A stretch of 64,000 nt of DNA from Intoshia linei. Lineage: Eukaryota > Animalia > Orthonectida. The stretch covers positions 1 through 64,000 of the forward strand of contig LWCA01000045.1 in NCBI GenBank assembly GCA_001642005.1, written 5' to 3'. A program made the translations under genes and the position numbers. Shown here piece after piece: positions 6,726 to 48,100 of the stretch. How positions within the stretch are numbered: the stretch's first letter is position 1; every line of letters starts with the position of its first letter. Below the pieces are notes generated by a model. That model saw only the letters and a list, made by a program, of their open reading frames with translations, was not told where the DNA came from and made no database searches.

Positions 6726-7387
6726 CATACATAAAACTTCATTCTAATTTTTTTATTAATCTTTTTGAAGCTGATATAAATTTTGTTTCAGAAAAGTTGG
6801 TGAACTGATAGATTTGTAGAATAATGTTTCGTCAGACTGGATATAAAAATTGATGATTAATAAAAAAATCTATTCCCTCATCTTTGGGGAGAGGTTAAGT
6901 TTTTATTGGCGTTCCCTTCTTCATATCGAGTCGAAAAGGAATGTAGTGCTGGAATGATCTTCAGACCAAAAAAACATCCAAATTGAAAAGTGTCCGACAT
7001 AAGTCTTAGGCACCCAATTGTAATTAATCTAAACACTCGTGGTTCATAACTTTAGACATTTTTTTATATCATATCTAGTGTATAATCATGAGAAAATATT
7101 TAAAAAACCTAAAAAAGTAAAAACTATAGAAAAAATATAATAATTAATGAAATATAGGTATTTTTAATTAAAAATGCAAAATTTAGAGCGACATAAGTCT
7201 TATGTACCTATAAAATAATACAATTAGTTATGTTAATTAAATGAAAATGTCAGATAAATATATATAAAATTACTAATATTTTGTATTCCATTATTTCTTT
7301 TTAATAATTGATACAATTCTTCAAAGCAATAAAGAATACAAACCTTGAATAGTTTTAGAGGTACGCGGTCCCATTCGTCCTGTATAT

Positions 7388-8957
7388 CAGGCATTCTCAA
7401 CCCTTTTTCGCTATGAACCCCTAAGATGATATTAAAAAAAACCTGTGGACCTCAAAAAAATAAATAATAATGACAAATTTTAATGAATCATTACATTTGG
7501 GTAACGAATGATGGCCAAATAAGATGGAGTAATCTAGCTTTGCGAGATAAATAAGATTCTTGGAATTCACGTTTTTACAAGATGTTCTATATCAAGTTCT
7601 AAATTTGATTATTGATATTTATCGAATATGTCCGATAGATAAAAAATATCACTTTTGACAGTATATATATTTATTCCATAGCTCCTTTCATTCAGAAATA
7701 CCATTACTGTGTTCAATAACGTAATAAACCGCTTTAAATAAGTGCCTTTGGATAACCACCTAACTTCGGTGCGCAATATTAACATCCTAAAAATGTCGTT
7801 ATTTTCTTAACATAAAACTTTAAATATTCCATCTTCAGAGAATTACTTTTTATAAAATTTACGGCTTCAATAATTAATAATAACGAAGTATTGAGACTAG
7901 TTCCTAATTTCTTCGCGATAAGATGCTCTCTATGTATTACGCAATGTATGGAAAATATTGATCGAACGACTTTTTTAAGCTCCGCTATAAACCTGCCTAC
8001 CAACCATATTTGCTGCTCTATCAGTGGCACATGCTATTATACTCTCAATTAAGATTTGATTTTCGGTAAAATATGTTTTTGCCTAATTAAAAATCGTAAT
8101 GCCTTTAGTATCAGTTTTGATACTACTTATAACATTTCTTCAATTATTTTTGATCTAACTAATATCTAATCTATCTAACTGATAAATCTAACGTATGCCA
8201 TTAACAGAAATGCATTATTTTTTAAGGTTGTTTCATCAATCTGAATAAAAATTTTTGTTGATCTCAGTGAAGTAGTAAATTTATCTTCAATATTTGTTGC
8301 CATTTCATGGATTCTTCTTGACACAGAAGAATTGCTGAATAGAAGAGATCGCATTACACTTCTATCAAGATTTTCAAATAGTTCACACAATACTATACTA
8401 ATTGCTGGAAGAATTAGTGATTCGCCATTACTATGAGGTATTTTATTTTCGGCAATTATTTTACTTATTTTGTAAAATCCCGAAAGCCCCTTTTATAAGT
8501 GCCTTAGATATGGATGTGTAATGATTTATAATCATATTTTCAAAATATGAAATACATTTATCTTTTTCATTTGGATGTATTCTGTTTAGGTGAGTTTTCA
8601 GTTTGATTGGTTTCATACTATCATTTCCTAGAATTTTCATACCAATTAAACACATCAGCAATTTTGGATTATTGGTTGATTCGATAAAGCCATAACATCA
8701 ATAACTAATTAGGTAGGATCAACATTTTTCCTAAAAATCACTAACATAAAGTCACTTTTTCATAGTTATCGTCATATTTTAAAATTGCAGTCTTTTTTTC
8801 AAAACTAAAGTCAGTTTATTTGTTTACTTCTTTAAAAAAATAAGTTTATGATTTGAAAATATGACGTTAGTTAAGAAAAAATGACTTTATGTAGTGAAAA
8901 TGTCTATAATATGTAATAAATGTATATAATTTTCATAGACCCCGTTGATAATGCCTG
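7388..8957 (-). mobile_element. Buster-family hAT transposon (decayed SCAND3/ZBED5-like transposase)
   Basis: TIR CAGGCATT(C/A)TCAAC and TSD CTGTATAT/CTGTATGT. ORF pieces read DSMKPIKLKTHL, SNSSVSRRI, IQIDETT, HCVIHREHL and EVRWLSKG. Confidence 0.92.
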
Positions 8958-9079
8958 CTGTATGTCTTCATATTTCTTCTAAGTTTACTGGATCTAGCTT
9001 ATAAACCTTATTTTTCAAAATTTTCCACACATCTTCAGTAATGTTTAAATCTGGACTTTGCACCGGTAAATCTTTTAAT

Positions 9080-9987
9080 AATTATTTTCCGAGTGTGCAA
9101 GCAACGATTTGTCGAAATATAGTAATCCAGCCTTTGAAACGCTCATAAAAGCTTTAAATAAATACCAAAAGAAAAATTTGAATATACTATATGACACAGT
9201 TACTACTTTTGTTACTGTTATATACCAATCTTTATGTGATAAAGCTATCTTTAATAGATTGTTTGTTTTACTGATTGATAAATGGGAGAAGACTAGTATG
9301 CAAGATTCTACCTTTTTCTATAAGGGAAAGTGTGATTTCATTAGTTATAACGGTGAACAGTTACGTAGAACCTTATGCTGAAAAAATGTACCTAATATTC
9401 TTTGATTTGTTGGAACACACATTAAAATTACAGGAAGCTTATATTTCTTTTTCAAGAAACGTGGATGAACCTGATACAGGGTTTTTTATAGTTCTTTGGA
9501 TTTAATTGGAGCTCTGGTGATCAGTTTAAACAATAATTTTTGCAAATTTTTAAGTTTGGACGTAAAATTAATAAATTTAATACACACTTGTTGTTTGCAG
9601 GATGCCATTGTTATCAAACAAAGTGCTTATGCACTTCTTGGTGATTTAGCTAAGTATTGCTTACAATATTTTTCAGGTTATATTATCGAATTCTTTGACC
9701 CAATAGTGAAACTTTTAAATACTCCCAAAAATCGTGCAGCTAGTAATGCTATATTGCTACTCAGCCAATTATCTCAGCACATGAGCCAAAACTTTGCTGA
9801 ATATGTCCCCATGTTCTTCCCAATATTTATTAATATTATAAATGACTTTTCAATGCCAATTTCAGTTATTCAAAATACAACTGTTTTGATCTGTAGGATG
9901 TGCAATTGTAACTCTGATGAACCCTGGAAATATCTCGATTCATTTATAATTTATAATGTTTTTATACGATTACGCTTTATCAAATGA
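9080..9987 (+). pseudogene. TNPO1: Transportin-1 (karyopherin beta2) internal HEAT-repeat fragment, intronless and frameshifted
   Basis: KYQKKNLNILYD, PDTGFFIV, DLIGAL and KQSAYALLGDLAKYC match transportin KYQHKNLLILYD, PDKDFMIV and RQSSFALLGDLTKAC. The match is split across ORFs 9109, 9275 and 9496. Confidence 0.85.
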
Positions 9988-11734
9988 TGGTTTTCTTTGC
10001 TGTGTGACACGGTGCTTGCTGCTTCTTCAATCCATCGATAAATGTTATTTATTTGCTTTTCTAAGAATTCTGATATTCTTGAGCGTTTATTATTCCTACA
10101 CACTTTATTAATACTCTTTTTCTATCTGCGATAATACCTACCCAAATCATATATGACTGGCTTTGTTTAATACTTCTACTTGTGTACATCGATAAAAATT
10201 TTGTTTTTTTAGGTCTTCATACATAAACTATTCGTCTTGTAAATAATTCAAAACGACTTTCATCAGTGAAGCTTATATTTTTATATTGGTTCGTTCATAC
10301 CACTTACATCATTTAAAACGGTTTATTCAGTGAAATGTTTTAAGAAACAGTTTTCAACTTGCAATTCTTCCATATAATCAAATTCTATATAACACGTTGC
10401 ACCTAATCAAACTCAGCTTTTTTGAAATACTGGAGTGTTACTTAACCCTTAATACTGTCAAGAAAAAGTTTTTATTTGTTTCCCTCATTATAATAGTCTC
10501 TTAGCTGGCGGTTAGCATGCGTTTCGACCGATCTTGGCAAACAAGCTATGCATAACCCTTTAATATTTTGAAACCCACATAGATAAATACTAAAGGTTTT
10601 ACTTATAAAACTGACTATTTTTCTTCCTTGTATTAAGACACGACATTGTATCTTTTTTAGTAACTTGCTAAAAAAATAGTTATATTTAATTTATAGATCA
10701 TTAATAATTCACTACGTTTTAGTTTCATCGATATTTAATATTGTTTAATTGAATTTATCAAGGTGCCTAAGACTTATGTCGTAAATATTTTTAATATCGT
10801 AAACAAAACAGTATTGAAATGTATCTTTTTATAGTAGTGTATGAGTTTATGATATTAGTATGGTTATATATTAGTGAGATCATTCTTTAATTAGTCTCAT
10901 ATTTAAGTTGAAGTTCAACATACGCCTTATTAACTTGATAGTGGTTTTTAATGAGAATATGTAGGGTGCCTAAGACTTATGTCGCGCATTGTATAAATAA
11001 TTACATATTCTACTTCGGTAGTGCTGATAAAACGTGGAGTAAAGTAATCCGACTGGACCACTCATAAGTGCCACGCCGCAAATTGTCAATATAATGTTGT
11101 TTAATTTGTTAACACCCCTTTTGCCCATAGTTTCAAATTTTCGAAAAAGTTTATCCTCTAATGTTTTTGGTTGTTTCATCAATTTGACATACTAAATAAA
11201 AATAAATACAGTATCATTGTCAATATTATTCAATAACACAAATTAAATAAAAATTGTCCATCTTAACACATAATTCAAAAATTTCTACATATATTTCTAT
11301 CTAAATTACTAAATATTTATGGTGTTTTATTTATTGAATAGCGAAACCAAGTTTTATTATTCAAAACGAAAACAAATAGGCGAATGGACATGAGTTATGG
11401 TGATGCTGTTGGCTTCAGGTCGATATTATGGAACAACAAAGTCTTAACTCATGAAAATGTTACTAATCAAGTAACAAAATTCTCGAATAATCAAACGAAC
11501 TTAGAACTATCGACAGCAATGCCACATGCCATATCGTCCATAGAGACAGGAAAAATGGAAAATAAGAGAACCATTTACAAAAGGCTCAATTATCAAACAA
11601 ACAAAACTAGAACATACTTCCCAACATAGATAAATTTCCAAAATGAAGAAATCAACTAATTAATAAAATAATTAAATCGTGTATCAGTCTATATAGATCC
11701 CAACATTTTCTTAAAAAGAAAAAAAATGATTCAT

Positions 11735-16099: not shown

Positions 16100-19000
16100 A
16101 TGCGTAACGCCTGCATAATATGTTGTGAATCATTTCTGCGTGGTGATAGTGATGCCTTGACCGCATTATCTTGCGGACATGTATTTCACATAAAATGTGC
16201 AGACATGTGGTTCATGTCACAAAATCATTTAGGAACTTATCCGAAAGCTAGAACCTGTCCAAATTGCAGAACGCCCGTTGACACTAAAAGAATAATTGAA
16301 AAGTTGTATTTTGAATTTGCAGATAATACTTTATTTGAAAAAGTTACGGACAATGTTGATATGAACGTATCTTTAAAAGAAAATGAAGATATTGACGAGC
16401 AACCTTGTTCAAGTGATTCACTACATGAAAATATTACTCAGTATAGCAAAAAAAGTAGCATGAAAGAATTTATCGAAAACACTACGGCTTCCATTGATTC
16501 GTTGGTAAGTCGTTTAAAAAAAAGCAAATTGGAAACTCTTTTGTATAAACAACAATTGGATATAATGAAATTAAAATTGGATACATATAAAGGTAGTGGA
16601 AAGCTTATTAATTGTTTACAAAAAGACTGTCTTAGACTTAAAAGAAATAATCTTGCGTTTACCCACATAAAAAGAATTATGGGTAATTAATTATACTTTA
16701 TATATTATTTAAAAATTATTTTATGACATCATCCGAACTTATATAAAAGATTACGCGATTTTTGTTTGTGTGTGTTTGTCTGTGTGTTATGCTTTATTTA
16801 AATAACTACCGTATTAAAATTTTTTAAAGACCACATTTCAATTACAGTTTTTTTTGGGACGTATATTAAGATAAATTTCACATCCTACAGGTCAAAAACC
16901 CCAGTTGTCCCTTTTTGTTAAAATCAAACAAATTGGAGAATTTAAAAAAATACGCTGATGCGGATTTTAAAATCATAAACATTATCATAAATTTAATCTT
17001 AATAAAATTATATCTTCAGGGTCAAATTCCATTCCTTTTTTTTGAAAACAGCCCTAGGATTTCAAAAAATTTACATGTTTTACAGTTGTATCCTGTTAAC
17101 ACACACAGAAAATTTCAATCCGAATAAGTGACGACTTCACGGTCAAAAAAGCATTTTAGTATTCATATATTTTTTTTCCGAAATATTTTATTAAAACAAA
17201 AAATGTGAAATAATTAACGGTCCGAAAATTAAAAAAAAAAAATAATTCTGATAGAGCTTATTCCAGTTGATATAAATATAAATTTTCAACCCCAGAAATT
17301 TACGCATTTCCGGTGAAAAATAATTTTTAATATATTATCAACCAATATATTTCAAATATTTCGATTAAATTCAAAAATTAAAATTGTAAAATGATCTTAC
17401 AATTTCAAAAAAAATGTAAATTGAACGTTTACAAATTTCTAATAAAGAAATATGGGTGAAATCTATATAATTCATTCCTTCGGAATTTTTTCATTGCTAC
17501 GCAATTTTTAAATTTCAAATTTTCATTTTCAAAACATTTTTTATAATCTTCAAATTTTAACATTACAGCAACGAATTTAATTATAATTAATAATTAACAA
17601 TGAGTCTAACATAATGAAATTATAGTTACAACCCTCAAAAGTGTCATAATTAACATTAATCCAAGAAAAAATAAAATTTAAATACTTGTAGTACATAATT
17701 TTTTCTTCTATCATTCATTTCGGGTTAAGCAATGTCATCAACATTGAAATAAATCTCAAAGTTATTAAGTTGATTCTAAACTTTGAAAGTTTTAAAAATA
17801 AGAAATTACTTAGCAATGATTAAAAAAACCCTGAAGAATTCAATTTTATATACGTGAAGGGTCCGCGCGAAAACCTAAAAACTAAAATAGGGTACATTTT
17901 TTACTGGTCTTTTTATAAAAACTTTTTTTTTATTTTCTAGGTTTTTCAAGTGGATTCTTGAACATGGAATGGGAATTTGGTGAAATCGATGATTTTTTGA
18001 TAAACATCCTTAATTATGCTTATTAAATATGTACATTAGGGCTATTTTATTTTTTTAATATAAAAATGACATGTATAGAAAATGAGTACTGCTTAATTTG
18101 CTGCAGAATGATATTAATATTTTTAGTTTTTATCCAAAAAAACGCCCGTCTTGAAGTTTAAAATTTTCATTTGATGATTTCTCAGTTAGTTTATTGAAAA
18201 TTTTAATAATCCGTTGTCGTGTTAATATATTTAAATAATAATTTTTAATTATCTTAATCATTATCATAAAATGTCGAATATTGAAATTATTTTATCATTT
18301 GAAAGTTTACAAGAAATGTCCGAAATATTTTCATATTTTGTTGAATTAAATTGAAATTAATATTTTGGTAAAATTATTATTCTATATATTATTCTTATTA
18401 TATATTTATTCGAAAAGCGGTATAATGACAATTGAACCTTGTGAAAGATCGTTTTCGACATTAATTAATGTTAGTAACTTAACTATTAAAGTTGAAAATA
18501 TATGTTCAAAAACTATAAACAAATTTAATTCATATTTGTTTGTTAAATTCAATTTAAATTTAGGCAATATTTATAAAAATGAATGCCTTAAATAATAAAA
18601 GGAGAATTCATAATAATATTGAAATCGCTATGTATATATTGCTATTAGTTATTCGCGATTTTTTGAACAAATTTTGCTACTATTTTTGTCAAAAAATCGA
18701 GAATAACCTGTAGTTTAAATCTAAAAACTTGTAAAATTCCAATTCAACATTATCATTTTGTAACTAAGTAATATGAGTACGTTTTTAATCTGGCAGCTAT
18801 AACTTATGTAAAAAATAGTTAAGATAAAGTGGCCAGAAAAATACGTACTATAACTTTTAGTATATTTGAGGCTAAATGTAAAGCCAAAACTACTTATCTA
18901 TGATGACGAATAAAAATTGTCGGCTTAAAATTTATTCCAAATAAACTAAAAGTTATAGTACGTATTTTTCTGGCCACTTTAGTTAAGAAAAATAAATAGT

Positions 19001-37481: not shown

Positions 37482-38033
37482 TCATACATTAAATAATGGT
37501 ATTAAAAATAAAATAAAAAGTAAAAAGACGTATAAATGAGATTGAAAAAGTGGTGCAGAATTGCAACCGTCTTGATTATTACAAATACAGGTAAACATGA
37601 TGAGACCATAATTATGAAAAATACAAGTTCTCCCTTCATTTAATCCAATGTCATCCTTTCGGCTACAATTTCGAATATACCGTACTTCCCTAGCGGTAAC
37701 GTCAACTTGGATAACTTTGACACAAATATCGTCGAGATTGACACATGGCATCAACGGATATGTGACGTTGTCAAAATAATCTGCACAGCCTCTATCAAAA
37801 TTTGAATCACAATTGTAACATTTTATTATAGATTTCTTTAAATATTTTTTCCTGGAAATATCATAGTTATCAACTGAATTATAATGAGGTGAATCTTGCA
37901 ACGATAATATGGCATCAGAAATATTTTTAAAGTTTTTTATAGAATTTCTATTACTATTTTCGAGAAATTGTCTGCTCCACATTCTGCCAAGTATAATTAA
38001 TAAAAAAAATTTTATCATATTTTCACAGTTCAC
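37482..38033 (-). CDS. Ly6/uPAR (quiver/sleepless-like) GPI-anchored protein, single exon
   Basis: Hydrophobic N-terminus, IKCYNC..C..C..CVK..RNC..C..CIC..DGCNSA (10 Cys) and hydrophobic GPI tail. Confidence 0.88.
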   Translation of the reverse strand: MNCENMIKFFLLIILGRMWSRQFLENSNRNSIKNFKNISDAILSLQDSPHYNSVDNYDISRKKYLKKSIIKCYNCDSNFDRGCADYFDNVTYPLMPCVNLDDICVKVIQVDVTAREVRYIRNCSRKDDIGLNEGRTCIFHNYGLIMFTCICNNQDGCNSAPLFQSHLYVFLLFILFLIPLFNV

Positions 38034-39866: not shown

Positions 39867-42800
39867 TTAAATTTGCTGAATAATGAGTTTTCGATCATTA
39901 TCATATGTAAACTTGTTATCTTGAAAAATTTTTGATTTATAAAACTCCAACACATTTGATATATTAAATTGGCGGACCTAAAAATAGATAATATTATAAA
40001 TAAAAGTGAATAATTATATTTTAAAATTTCTAGAAAGATGAATTGTTAAATGCTTTTTTTGTAAAACATTTCTAAATAAATTTTTTCTGAAGTAAAAATT
40101 CTATTAGCCATAATTTTGTTAAATGTTATAATTTAATTTTTATGGGTAAACAAATTATGTGTGGTAACTGGAGATAACTATATGAACTTTTATTTTAAAT
40201 TCTAGGACAATTTTCATTTTTTAAAAAAGGGTAATTTGTTGTTTTGGCTATGAAGATATAATTTTAATAATATATTTTTGAAATTGAAAATTATGATGGT
40301 GTTTATGATTTTAAAATCTGTATCAGACAGAACGAAACTTTTTTGAACCATGGCCTGAAAAAGGTTGAGAACCGCTGAGTTATAGGACTCGTGTGATTGT
40401 TAATATTAATTTTTAAAAAAAGGATAATTGAGGTTTTTTGCCGGTAAGATGTAAGTTTCTGAGATTAAAATTAATCTTAAATTTCTCCCCGGAAAAAAGT
40501 GAATTTGAATGTGTTTTTTTAAATTTTAGCATTCTTAGTCATTGAAATAAACGATAACACACACACAAAAAAAGTTAAGATTAAATAACTTACTTAATTT
40601 TTATGTATAGTAAGAATAACAAAAGTTGTAGGCTTTTGAAAAAATTTTATATCTTTAAATTGAGTAAAAAAACTATGCAAATTGGATTCAAAATAACCCT
40701 AAAAACTCACTAACCACTTAAAATTAAATCTTAATTGACTAATTAATATACCTTAGATCAGTGATTACTAAAGGCGGTGCATCATATAAAATTAAAATAA
40801 ACACATTTTTTTCATTTTTGGAAGTATTTTTTATAAAACCGGGTAATTGTCACGTTAAAATTTTACAGAGAAGAGTATTCACTTTTCCAAGTCAGTTTAA
40901 TGTAATTTAAGTTTGGGACACTAGGGTGTCACATTTTTTTGAAATTTTGAGCGTTTGATGGGCAATTAGCACTAAATGTATATGTTTAAAATAGAAAAAC
41001 AATTTCGTAATCAAATGCATTTAACGTAATCTATTCGAGTTGCGTTTATCATTTTAAATTGATCATATCAAGTTTAAATGATTTTAATGATATGACACAT
41101 CCATTATTATGGGGTTATTATGTTGAAGCCCGTTTTATCTTATGTATATTAATTTTTAAATTTTGATAAATGCTGATTAAGTATAAATCATTTATTTTGG
41201 GTGATGAGAAATGGTTAAAAACCCCCATTTAGAAACCGCTGTTCTAAATCAAATGTAGCACAAAAACAGAAAAACATTAAAGCAAAATACTGGCAATATA
41301 AAAAAACCTTTTCAACAAATTCTCTAGCAGAAACTTGAACAAACTCTAAAATATCCTCATTAGCATTAATAGTAGAATGTTTAAAATTGTACTCTTCAGT
41401 GCACATTTGTTTAAGAACAAAAATCAATAGTTCATTATAATCTTTTTGGAAATTAAGTTGTCGCGAAAAAACCTTTCGCATCGATCGCATCACACTAAAC
41501 TTTTGAGTCGAAATAAAACTATTGAGAACTAATCTAATGGCTAAATTAACGTCATTATCATTAACATATTGACGCAAGTGCATTCGAGCATTGGCTTCAG
41601 AAATTCTAATTAAAGATTCAATGTGTCTGACTGTAATGGGAATGCTGCCAGTTTCAATAGATTGACGTCGAAGTTGCGAGTATACCTTTGAAATTTTATC
41701 CTTATTAATACCGGTGAGTTTGGGGAAAATCTTTTCTCGAGCAAAAATTATATACTTTTTTAATAAAGATTGACTGATCCGAACATTCTCAGATTCACTG
41801 GGATCGGTATTGGAATTGTTAGATTGGTCGTTATGAGGGTGATGTTTTACGTGAGATTTTACGATAAATTTGGCCATATTTTCATCTTGCACGCTATCGA
41901 CAATATCTCTGACTACACACAAAATATCAAATCGAGAAAGGATTGGTTCAGTCAAGTCGACATTGTTTCTGAATGTCATGGATTGATTGTATCTACCATT
42001 AATCGGATTAGCTGCAGCAATAACGGCACACCGCGCGCGCAGAGACGTCACTATTCCTGCTTTAGAAATGGAAATGCTTTGTTGTTCCATAGCTTCATGA
42101 ATACTCGTTCGGTCCTGGTCACTCATTTTGTCAAATTCGTCAATTAGACAGTGTCCCTTGTCAGCAAACACCAATGCACCTGCTTCAATAGACCAAGTTT
42201 GAGATACTGCATTTTTTTGAACACTAGCCGTTAAACCTACAGCAGAGGCTCCTTGACCAGTAGTGTAAACAGAACGCGGAGCAACTACTTGTACAAATTT
42301 CAAAAACTGTGATTTTGCTGTACCAGGATCACCACAAATCAAAATATTAATGTCTCCACGCAATTTATGCTTACCACCCGGGTTTTTCGATTGACCTCCA
42401 AACAAAGACATGGCTATAGATAGTTTAATATCCTCGTGACCGTAAATAGATGGAGCGATGCTATTAATAATTTTTTGGTGAAATTTTTCGTCTTTTGACA
42501 ATTTAATAATTTCATTGATATCCTCATCAGTCAATGATGAAGCAATCATGGAATTGTCCTTTTTGGAGATGTAATTAGCTTCAATTACTGTAGCAAACAC
42601 GGGAAACCCTTGTTTCACATTTAAAGATCCATCGTAATTATTGTGATATACTCCAGTAATCTCAATTTCGTCGCCGGGCTTGCAAAAATCAACTAAATCA
42701 TCTTCCAATATAATATCCTTACATCGTGGTAATCTCCCAGCCGGTACTTTTCCAGGACTCTCTTGAATTCTCAAACGCTGAAAATTTTTGTAAATTGTCT

Positions 42801-43827
42801 CTTCCATATTTATTTCAAACCGTGAACTGGAATGACACTCTGGACATTTATCTGGTTTAATTTCTTTGTCATAATGCTGAGCAAAGGGGCCAATAACATA
42901 TCTACACAATAAACACGTATACCTAACCATTGCCAGTTGTGGCAATATTCCAGTGCACGACGATACTACGCCGCTCGTCCGAACCAATTGATTTAAATGT
43001 AAATGCCTCAATGATCTTAAATCTTCAATTAAAGGTAGTTCAGATATCCTGACATTAATATCAGGCGTAATTTCAACGTATCGCGGATAAATATTAAAAA
43101 TCACTTCTTGAGCAGACTCGTTAAAAATTTTTAACATTTGAGTTGGGGCTTCAGGTAAAAAGTACGCCAAGACTTGTTCTTGGCTAGCTAAATAAGTATA
43201 ATCAACTACCAAACTTTTTGAATTAGTTTCAACCATCTTACGAATAATTTCTCTGTAAAAATAATTACCATTTTCACTTTTATAGGTTCGTAGAAAATTT
43301 TTAAATCTATTAAAAATTTCAGTTCGAGGACCAATCATTGAAACCCAATCACTTACTGAATGACCTTTTAAATCTTCTAAATTGTCAATACTTTCAATTT
43401 GTTTGTCAGCTATAATATTGCCTTGTTTGTCGTCAATTTCATCGTATAATATATTTTTTCGAGTATTTCGATTTGATACTATATCTGTTGCTCGATCTCG
43501 ATAATTTAACTCTTTTTCAGCTGAAACTCGCTCAGATATTGACATGTTTGATAGTTCTTCGTCGTCTATTCCTTCTTCACCGTAAGTATCCAGTTCTGGT
43601 ATTTGTCGGTAGTCTTTTTCCATGTTGTCTCCAAATAATTCTATCCCACCTTCTTCTTCGTCCTCGTATTTCGAATCGTCCAAAAATGCTGACCCGTCAA
43701 ATACTGGCGACGCTAGTTGTTCTATAGTTTCATCGTCCGTATCAGCCGTTTCGTGTAATAATGAGTATATGTCGTCTTCGTTGTCCTAAATTATTATTTA
43801 GGTACATTTTTAGTCTATTACGCTCAT
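39867..43827 (-). CDS. MCM2: DNA replication licensing factor MCM2; exons 43827-43822, 43785-41308, 39977-39867
   Basis: [11 protein letters not shown] histone-binding motif, Zn finger, [30 protein letters not shown] and SRFD. The terminal exon VRQFNI...IIQQI* matches the MCM2 C-terminus. Confidence 0.97.
40920..41160 (+). repeat. Dispersed repeat, also at ~3135-3425
   Basis: Shared TAGGGTGT(T/C)ACATTTT...TTTGATGGGCAA...CTATTCGAGTTGC...GTTGAA(C/G)CCCGTTT. Confidence 0.7.
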
Positions 43828-45194: not shown

Positions 45195-48100
45195 TTAATT
45201 GGTAATATTTTGTCGACGTTTTAGCCATTCGTTTTCTTGGAGTAAAGCTTTGTTTTGTTTTTGTAAATACAACAATTTGTCTTCTAAAGATCTAATATAA
45301 ATTTTTTTTTTCAGTCTACACACTTTAGCAGCTTCCCTAAATTAAAAATACAATTTTATCTAAAAATTAACTAGCATAACGTACATTAAAATGACATACA
45401 GTCAGACCTCTCAATGTCGCCATTTTGGTATTTCGATATTTATGGCGGTATTGACAGTTTTGATTTATTGAGAGTATAATGTAGCGAATATATCATAAAT
45501 AAGATTACTATGTATTAATAAGCAGTCATATCGAAAAATAATAAAAACATAGTGGCGGTACTGAGATGCCTGATTGTATATTATACATCGTATAATGCAA
45601 TGGTTTTCAACTAGGGGTCGCGAAATTTATCAGGGGGTCGTGAGAATTTGAAAATTTATGAATATATTTATTTATTTTTTTTATTTTAATATAATATTAA
45701 AAGTAATAATGTTACGTAAATATTTTTACATTCTGTATCACAATTTCAAATGTTCTTCTTCACTCAATATATAAACTATTCCGATAAAATACAGGATGAA
45801 GTAATAGATTTAATAAATGAATCCACTGCACGTAATATTTTCTATGAAAAACCACCAAGTATTTTTTGGTGTGATATGATTGATTTATATCCAAATGTAT
45901 TTACGATTGCTTTGAGATTGATATTATCTTTTCCATCAACTTATCTATGTGAAGCAGGATTTTCTACGCTTGTTCATATAAAAATAAAGTCAATAAACAA
46001 ATTGAATGTTAAGAATAATATGAGGCTCGCCTTATCGCATACACTGTTCAGGATATCAATAATTGCAGCTAAAATGCAACCTCAAATTTCACAAAAATAA
46101 ATAAATAAATTTCGTTATAATACATTGTACTGAACACAGTATAAAATATAAATAAAACTGAGTATCATTTTTTTAATATTTTTATTTATGTGAATTCATA
46201 TAATATTTGGAGTATATAGAAAATTTTTGGGTCGCGAACACAAAAAGGTTGAAAACCACTGGTATAATGCATATTATACATACATATGCACCATGTACAT
46301 TGTACATATGGGTAATTTTTGTTCACTTGCGACTGTTAACGTTATATTTTAAAAAGTGCTAGCACTAACAGGTAATAATTGTAATAAAGGATAAATTATA
46401 AAAAAATTAATAATATAACTACGGTAACTAAAAATTGCTAGCTGAAATATCTAAAAATGGCTTTAAATTTAAATTAGAAAAAACCTTTGAACATAAATAC
46501 TGTGGTTTGTACGATTTATCAATATCATTTATTTTAGTATCGTTTAATATGAATCGATTTCGTTTTTTATTTAGTAAATGCACAAAATCAAAAATACCAT
46601 CCATATGCAAAATGAATTTTTCTAATAAAAAAAAGTAAACACCCTAATATACATATTAAATTATTTTAAAATGTTAAATTAATAAATAGATTTAACTTCA
46701 TTCAAGTTTAAAAAATATAGCTGTCAAATGATTTTTATTCAAGAATTTTCAGGCACCACCAAAAACCGGTTTGTAACCCCCTGGGTGCCCGCACCCCCGG
46801 TTAAGAATCCATGGATTAAATTGACAAACCTATTTTTAAATTTACGTAATTCTACTCTTGATATAAATTTTGGAGTGTCTTTGTTTTTGGTTGATTCTAT
46901 ATTGCATTTTTCAGAATTGGCTTCTAAATAATCATGTTCCATTTTATTGTATAAATAAAAGTTTCAAATTTTTTTATTAAAAGTTAGATAAGTGTATTAG
47001 CTATTAAATTACGTAATGTTTATATTGAACTGTGTACATTTTATATATAAAGTTACTTATATTTACATACAAAAAAAATACAAATAATTATCGATTTTCA
47101 TAATTTTGCATATCTAGGACAGTGATGACAAAAATATGACACGCGTATAAGTAGTGACATGTACATGGATTCTGGCTGATACGCTTGACATGCCAGAAAG
47201 CTTATTTGAAATTTTTAATATGTTGTGGAAAAATTAACTCAAAAGTGTGTAATAATAAAAATTTTCTATAAATTTTCTATTAGAAAAGTATACATACAGT
47301 GTACTTAAATTATTTATCATTTAAATGAGACACGCGACTAAAAAAGAAAACAGCAACAAAAAATTTTTGACACTCCAACTAAAAATTCTTGCCATCACTG
47401 ATCACGATCTGAAATATTTTTTAATATAGGATCAGGAAAACTTTTATTTTATAATAAAATAAAATTAAATTAAATGTGAATCGGAGAATAAAATGTGGTG
47501 ATATTCAATTAATACAGTTTATCATAAATGGAAAATCCACAACGATATAGAAATATTCTGTGATGTACAGTGTACAATGTACATTAAGATGTCTCACAAA
47601 AAATGAAAAATTATATTTTTGAACATCCTTAAGTATAATAGTGATCAAGTATAAAAAAATCATATTTCCAAAATATTAATGAATTTCAACCAATATTGAA
47701 AATAGCCGACCATTTAAAGTTTTCTATATACAGTCAAACCTGTTCAATATGAATCCTGTTTAATATGAATACAGCTTAATTTGAACAAACTTAATAAATA
47801 TTGATTTTTTTGTATAAAAAAATTATGAAAAGTGATTTGTTTTATATGAATCTTTTCATTTTGTACACTGAACATGAGTTTATGTAAAATAAAACTATTT
47901 TCATTTCATTTTGAGCGTTATTATATTTTATTGTCACATTTATACTGATTTTATGAAATATATTTATTTTTTTAATATGAACATTAAAAATAAAAATAAC
48001 AAGCGAAAAAAAAAAGATTTATCTCTGAATGACAAAAGAAAATAGTGTAAACAAATCAATATATCAAACAATAGCTTGGGTTGCGAAAGCCTGGATAAGT

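Follow-up and report, generated by a model that had tools for sequence, protein, structure and literature searches.

A degenerate Tc1 element of Intoshia linei harbors a single-copy, decaying fragment of a transportin-1 gene

The first 64,000 nucleotides of contig LWCA01000045.1 from the Intoshia linei assembly GCA_001642005.1 (hereafter the window) form a very A/T-rich stretch, with around 25% GC, in which a degenerate Tc1-family transposon with inverted repeat/direct repeat (IR/DR) ends holds, inside its transposase gene, a pseudogenised piece of a host transportin-1 gene. The features of this locus are given in Table 1. The 20-21-nt core of the IR/DR, CGACATAAGTCTTAGGCACC, is found twice in direct orientation at the left end (6995-7014 and 7189-7208), and its reverse complement twice at the right end (10762-10781 and 10965-10984), with core spacings of 194 and 203 bp, each end being about 200 bp long and comprising two core repeats. 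These cores were taken from the repeat families D7, I5, I7 and I8 on the left and D2, I2 and I5 on the right. The transposase, whose sense strand is the minus strand, is split into one piece ending in QQAPCHTAKKTII (9983-10048) and another beginning with LKDLPVQSPDLN (8971-9078), the latter providing the Pfam DDE_3 match, and a better-preserved member of the family (L031) matches both HTH_Tnp_Tc3_2 (E 3e-11) and DDE_3 (E 1e-10). With a DDE/D transposase, a paired-like helix-turn-helix and IR/DR ends, the window element belongs to Tc1/mariner as a Tc1-like IR/DR transposon.

Table 1. Features of the Tc1 copy and of its two inserts (window coordinates; TIR, terminal inverted repeat; TSD, target-site duplication)
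Feature	Position	Strand	Evidence or remarks
Tc1 copy, degenerate	6989-10994	minus	Three-block collinear blastn match to the canonical copy on C3227
Left IR/DR	6995-7208		Two direct core copies, transposase-binding-type
Nested hAT-type element, decayed transposase	7388-8957	minus	TIRs, 8-bp TSD, repeated ends
Tc1 transposase segment with LKDLPVQSPDLN, C-terminal part of the DDE domain	8961-9081	minus	Translation, Pfam DDE_3 (E 7e-5), canonical-copy match
Pseudogenised transportin-1 fragment, 873 bp	9082-9954	plus, antisense to transposase	96.0% identity to C3506:9258-10133 (minus)
Tc1 transposase, N-terminal two-thirds, decayed, with ...ISFTDESRFELF... and ...QQAPCHTAKKTII	9955-10760	minus	Translations, canonical-copy match
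Right IR/DR	10762-10984		Inverted core, two copies

The canonical uninterrupted copy of this Tc1 family, located on contig C3227, is 1598 bp long, and its alignment with the window copy falls into three blocks in collinear order (6989-7387, 8961-9083 and 9951-10994); once both inserts are removed, around 1560 bp of Tc1 sequence are left. The family is well represented, with at least 45 matches in the assembly for each half of the element in a genome DNA search, and an open reading frame (ORF) longer than 170 residues was found in none of the sampled copies. The consensus end of the family is TACAGTG (TA followed by CAGTG), and the window copy reads AAAAGTG on the left and TACAATG on the right, with no TA visible on its left flank. 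The DNA immediately flanking the element is unique, and the contig extends over at least 64 kb. Two minus-strand ORFs that flank the element (10973-11182 and 6881-7036) match no Pfam family, and joining them across the Tc1 gave no convincing gene.

The insert reads as transportin-like HEAT repeats interrupted by two frameshifts and several stop codons, and by itself gives weak Pfam matches to TPR_IMB1 and HEAT. Its parental sequence lies on contig C3506, with which the identity given in Table 1 holds across 876 aligned columns. There, the copied stretch falls wholly inside an exon with 643 open codons (C3506:10898-8970, minus strand), whose C-terminal 343 residues match residues 564-888 of human transportin-1 (PDB 1qbk/2qmr) with an E value of 7.5e-45. 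Pieces located upstream in the parental gene carry HEAT and HEAT_EZ repeats, and the C3506 gene is predicted to encode an intact transportin-1 (karyopherin beta-2) homologue. The Tc1 family of the window has no match on the 20.9-kb parental contig. We also considered that the fragment could belong to a further mobile element inserted into the Tc1, and rejected this idea because the homology to the parent runs from junction to junction, with no extra transposable element (TE) sequence.

An earlier sequence-only reading of this stretch had described a Tc1 with IR/DR ends of about 200 bp, a transposase split by some 0.9 kb of antisense, transportin-like sequence lacking a poly(A) tail, and a normal Tc1 size after removal of this insert and of a nested hAT; the coordinates, lengths and matches reported here bear out each of these points. 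It had also counted a sole transportin locus at this position as grounds for refutation, and the intact homologue on C3506 shows that there is another. Its description of the insert as intronless does not serve as evidence: since the copied segment lies within a single parental exon and spans no intron position, the lack of introns says nothing on whether DNA or RNA was the template.

To establish the copy number we searched the assembly (41.6 Mb in 3520 contigs) at the DNA level, using the fragment and the entire parental region as queries, and in six-frame translation, using the C-terminal half of the parental protein, and found no copy of the fragment other than the parent and the one in the window. 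Around a dozen other copies of the family extend across this position, and all of them lack an interruption there, as judged from paired matches of the element halves and from an alignment of around 28 copies. The chimera is a Pack-TIR in the structural sense (Tan et al., 2021; Nat Commun 12:4280, PMC8277862), in that sequence of a single TIR element borders the non-TE sequence on either side, while the parent of the latter is found elsewhere and is not associated with a TE. A mobilised, multicopy Pack element would comprise at least two copies of the chimera, each with its own target duplications, and the DNA and protein searches yield only one. The sequence-only reading, which had named the element a Pack-type Tc1 and called for a count of the copies with the same cargo, had itself stated that a single copy would reduce it to a one-off insertion; its structural description stands, the mobilised cargo is not supported, and by that criterion the chimera, with its degenerate termini, is a one-off insertion rather than a mobilised Pack element, in an assembly that may be incomplete.

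The fragment differs from its parent by 31 substitutions and by two frameshifting deletions of 2 bp and 1 bp. Nine of these differences are synonymous and 21 non-synonymous, and 17 substitutions replace a parental G/C by A/T in the copy against six in the reverse direction, a pattern of neutral, A/T-biased decay on the side of the copy. The divergence is distributed unevenly along the fragment. The stretch from 9082 to 9607 concentrates 28 substitutions and both deletions (5.3% diverged), whereas only three substitutions are present between 9608 and 9950 (0.9% diverged; Fisher's exact P = 2.8e-4). The latter begins with a run of 274 bp of perfect identity (window 9608-9881 against C3506:9330-9604), for which simulation gives a probability of 2.6e-4. 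For a neutrally decaying copy, the simplest explanation that these figures suggest is a later tract of ectopic gene conversion between parent and copy.

The Tc1 copy is itself more diverged than typical copies of the family, which are at 3-6%: it differs by 11.6% from the family consensus and by 8.8% from both subfamily consensuses, and its private divergence, discounting variants found in two or more other copies, amounts to 6.3%. Compared with the 8.8% of the Tc1, the fragment as a whole is 3.6% diverged from its parent, which suggests that the capture does not predate the Tc1 copy and probably took place after it, in a comparison that is only weakly informative on account of the subfamily structure of the Tc1 and the uneven divergence of the insert.

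At the site of insertion, uninterrupted members of the family read ...CAATCTTTT-AAT(G/T)TTTTTATACG..., while in the window the left junction passes from ...TCTTTTAATAA into the fragment sequence TTATTTTCCGAG... and the right junction from ...ATAATTTAT into AATGTTTTTATACG. No Tc1 bases were lost in the insertion, the two flanks being contiguous in the canonical copy and in the roughly 28 aligned ones, and poly(A) is absent from both junctions. Because the junctions fall within stretches made up of A and T only, where 3-9 bp (AAT, or AATTATTTT/AATGTTTTT) are present on both sides, and because the family is polymorphic at precisely these bases (AATG, AATT or AATTA), they can be read in two ways. 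In one reading, AAT is duplicated and two extra bases are added. In the other, the nine bases AATTATTTT/AATGTTTTT constitute an imperfect duplication with two mismatches and TTATTTT represents a 7-nt overlap with the parent, an overlap of a length that about 0.1-0.2% of random pairings would show by chance even at this base composition. Such a microhomology fits template switching and is silent on whether a break made by the transposase started the repair. Both readings correspond to repair-type junctions, and neither resembles the insertion of a Tc1 (TA) or of a long interspersed nuclear element (LINE; poly(A)).

As a separate observation, made by eye only, the minus strand shows a GT just upstream of the insert (9951-9975) and an AG just downstream (9060-9085) that, used as splice sites, would remove the cargo in frame. 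Given that the transposase ORF of the window copy is full of stop codons, this pair is probably meaningless.

A second capture was found in the same assembly. A 429-bp fragment at C2710:451-879, matching Pfam TPR_IF140-IFT172 with an E value of 1e-25, shares 96.0% identity with the intact IFT140 gene of contig C2335, from which it differs by 17 evenly spread substitutions, 13 of them from G/C to A/T. It is likewise single-copy outside its parent and lies antisense inside a Tc1-like element, with DDE_3 on one side; no DNA match was found between the Tc1 family that bears it and the one that bears the transportin fragment. Comparison with an uninterrupted relative of the IFT140-bearing element on C128 (L083:568-1363) reveals the replacement of 4 bp (ATGA), with a junction overlap of at most 1-2 nt, which is a typical end-joining scar. 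Stray gene fragments do not seem to be a general feature of this genome, an idea that we rejected because control searches of the genome with the MCM2 exon of the window and with the remainder of the transportin exon returned no stray fragments of either.

The positions of the two captures are close to each other in terms of the encoded protein. The IFT140 fragment is inserted between ...DPKHKAKITT and SFFQQKGIDVMEWPAQSPDFN, 14 residues before the P of PAQSPD, and the transportin fragment three residues before the P of the motif, so that a distance of 11 codons separates the two sites within the shared linker. For two cases, both of which were picked out by coding disruption, sites this close would be expected by chance with a probability of roughly 4%, and we take the shared position as a lead and not as a result. 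Along this line one could propose that the capture of host exons is non-random, given that two Tc1 families carry antisense pieces around 96% identical to their parents in the same linker of about 20 codons, which extends from the second Asp motif to PxQSPD(L/F)N; the site could be fragile or specifically cleaved, or the inserts could be retained through antisense small RNAs against the host genes. We regard this proposal as improbable. If the bias were confirmed, the recurrence in another Tc1 family, in the same orientation, with similar age and at nearly the same position, would speak of a hotspot for breaks or of selection.

Another copy of the window Tc1 family, on C1731 (L017:2282-3074), is interrupted by an insertion of around 790 bp without a long ORF and flanked by a duplication of about 11 bp, TTTACAAAAGG. 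It was examined as a possible capture of host coding sequence and rejected, as it looks like a separate repeat with its own duplication; it is probably an unclassified repeat.

Taken together, these observations make it likely that the chimera arose by transposition-independent filling of a break in a resident Tc1 and was never amplified. The Tc1 would already have been in place, and probably already inactive, when a double-strand break occurred in it, within the part that codes for the linker joining the second catalytic Asp motif to PxQSPDLN. The large last exon of transportin, a gene at an unlinked position, would then have supplied 873 nt by copying or capture, and the ends would have been rejoined in A/T-rich sequence at the cost of few or no Tc1 bases, that is, by gap filling or templated insertion. 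The fragment would have decayed neutrally from then on, its 3' third probably being re-homogenised by ectopic gene conversion with the parent. We favor this sequence of events because the fragment is single-copy, homologous to the parent from junction to junction and devoid of poly(A), because no Tc1 sequence was lost and the Tc1 is at least as diverged as the insert, and because the termini are mutated, the flanks are unique and no sampled family copy retains an ORF above 170 residues. The IFT140 case, also single-copy and with junctions of the end-joining type, points in the same direction, as does the assignment of single-copy Pack-TIRs mostly to gap filling (Tan et al., 2021).

Several points weigh against break filling in a resident element. 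The relative ages are not decisive, since the Tc1, at 6.3% by the conservative count of private variants, is hardly more diverged than the older part of the insert, at 5.3%. AATTATTTT is seen in two of the aligned copies and, if it were ancestral, the left junction would have a 7-nt microhomology, with a chance of about 0.001-0.002. Finally, the assembly is fragmented, and further copies of the chimera may sit in unassembled DNA.

Abortive gap repair that follows the excision of a transposon usually deletes internal sequence of the element. This is relevant for the alternative of a transposition-dependent capture, in which the Tc1 was excised and, during repair from the sister copy, the template was switched to the transportin exon and back, giving rise to a Pack-Tc1 that was never remobilised or moved only into unassembled DNA. 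The cargo does lie inside an element that still holds both IR/DR ends, the left junction may include a 7-nt microhomology, and this route is allowed for a minority of single-copy Pack-TIRs (Tan et al., 2021). Nevertheless, the cargo is single-copy, no internal Tc1 sequence is missing as it would be after the usual abortive repair, the termini are mutated with no TA on the left flank, and the insert probably postdates, and at any rate does not predate, the Tc1 copy, all of which make this alternative unlikely. The gap repair or template switch put forward by the sequence-only reading is accordingly upheld in part: template-directed repair is likely, and the route through transposition is disfavored by the single copy and by the absence of Tc1 loss.

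We consider it slightly more doubtful still that the template was RNA, with a piece of transportin mRNA or cDNA being captured at a break or inserted by the machinery of a non-long terminal repeat (non-LTR) retrotransposon. Both the transportin and the IFT140 fragments are purely exonic, and the flanking 9-bp duplication with two mismatches, if real, would agree with such an origin. On the other hand, the transportin fragment stops short at both ends within a single exon, making the missing introns uninformative, there is no poly(A), and the IFT140 site shows a 4-bp deletion instead of a duplication. A processed, LINE-mediated retrocopy in particular was rejected, since a poly(A) is lacking, the duplication is ambiguous (3-9 bp) and the parental segment is a single exon. 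An erroneous joining of transportin reads into a repeat could be imagined for a multicopy Tc1 in a fragmented assembly; it is highly implausible here, as the 31 substitutions and two indel events that separate the fragment from its parent imply a separate locus, the two Tc1 flanks match in divergence and represent collinear halves of a single copy, and the element is surrounded by unique DNA in a contig that is 64 kb long or more.

Templated or filler-DNA insertions arise at double-strand breaks by end joining or by synthesis-dependent repair. The insertions described here share with them a clean insert of unlinked origin that lacks poly(A) and transposon ends of its own and whose junctions show 0-7 nt of homology, and in the IFT140 case a 4-bp deletion of the target; they differ in that the site lies inside a transposon, which gives them the formal look of a cargo element.

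The closest comparison is with the single-copy Pack-TIRs of animals. A survey of 100 animal genomes reported 370 Pack-TIRs, of which 208 are hAT and 115 TcMariner, most of them single-copy and 67.6% showing microhomology (median 2 bp) at one breakpoint or at both; for primates, the TE is usually found without the insert in outgroups, and single-copy cases were ascribed mostly to transposition-independent gap filling (Tan et al., 2021; PMC8277862). Like these, the window element has host sequence within one TIR element, a parent elsewhere that is not associated with the TE, a single copy, an internal breakpoint and short or ambiguous microhomology, and it belongs to the second most common host superfamily (115/370). 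Unlike them, its cargo is fully coding and measures 873 bp against a median of 224 bp. The same survey reports a cis bias of the parents, on which the present case gives no reading because the parent is on another contig, and discusses antisense transcripts to the parent as a possible effect. The window element fits the class of animal single-copy Pack-TIRs in every feature tested, and is thus an event of a kind already catalogued.

Plant Pack-MULEs, Pack-CACTA and Pack-TYPE elements are similar in being TIR elements with fragments of host genes between their ends. They are, however, amplified, mobilisable and non-autonomous, and often present in multiple copies with several fragments, whereas the chimera described here is one copy, which has kept its transposase remnant in full and gives no indication of having moved. 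The transduplication in Turmoil-1 of Caenorhabditis elegans also involves an animal DNA transposon with host-derived protein-coding sequence; there, the captured sequence is reported to form part of the terminal repeats of the element and to belong to the family, unlike the capture in the window, which is private to one copy (PMC2572040). The present locus is a well-resolved invertebrate example of a host coding fragment in a Tc1, with the parent identified and both junctions readable. Its value is that of a data point, and no new principle is established by it.

The other interruption of the Tc1 is a 1570-bp element bounded by an 8-bp TSD, CTGTATAT (7380-7387) and CTGTATGT (8958-8965), and by TIRs reading CAGGCATT(C/A)TCAAC, 14 nt long with 13 of the 14 positions matching. 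Its ends recur throughout the genome in many short derivatives, roughly 650-700 bp long and similar to miniature inverted-repeat transposable elements (MITEs), while its interior is rare. The decayed ORF pieces have no match in Pfam; the nearest Atlas clusters of the protein remnant carry the FAM200/ZBED5 RNase-like domain, known from hAT transposases, and DUF4371 (score 0.92, 184 shared features), a resemblance that we use only as a lead. The 8-bp TSD, the short TIRs and the Atlas resemblance support the assignment of the element to hAT, as the sequence-only reading had proposed. Its subterminal region contains a 56-nt inverted repeat at 8744-8892 (79% complementary, with a 37-nt loop), and this region matches many of the MITE-like derivatives on both the plus and minus strands.

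Elsewhere in the window, MCM2 is encoded by a single open frame of 822 codons (41218-43683, minus strand). Considering also the large exons of transportin (643 open codons) and IFT140 (1131 open codons), this genome seems to have few introns for a gene set of animal type. A QVR/Ly6 domain is found at 37485-38033 and a RING finger at 16100-16687. On the plus strand, an ORF at 45750-46097 with a weak match to Dimer_Tnp_hAT (E 0.004) is probably another hAT remnant.

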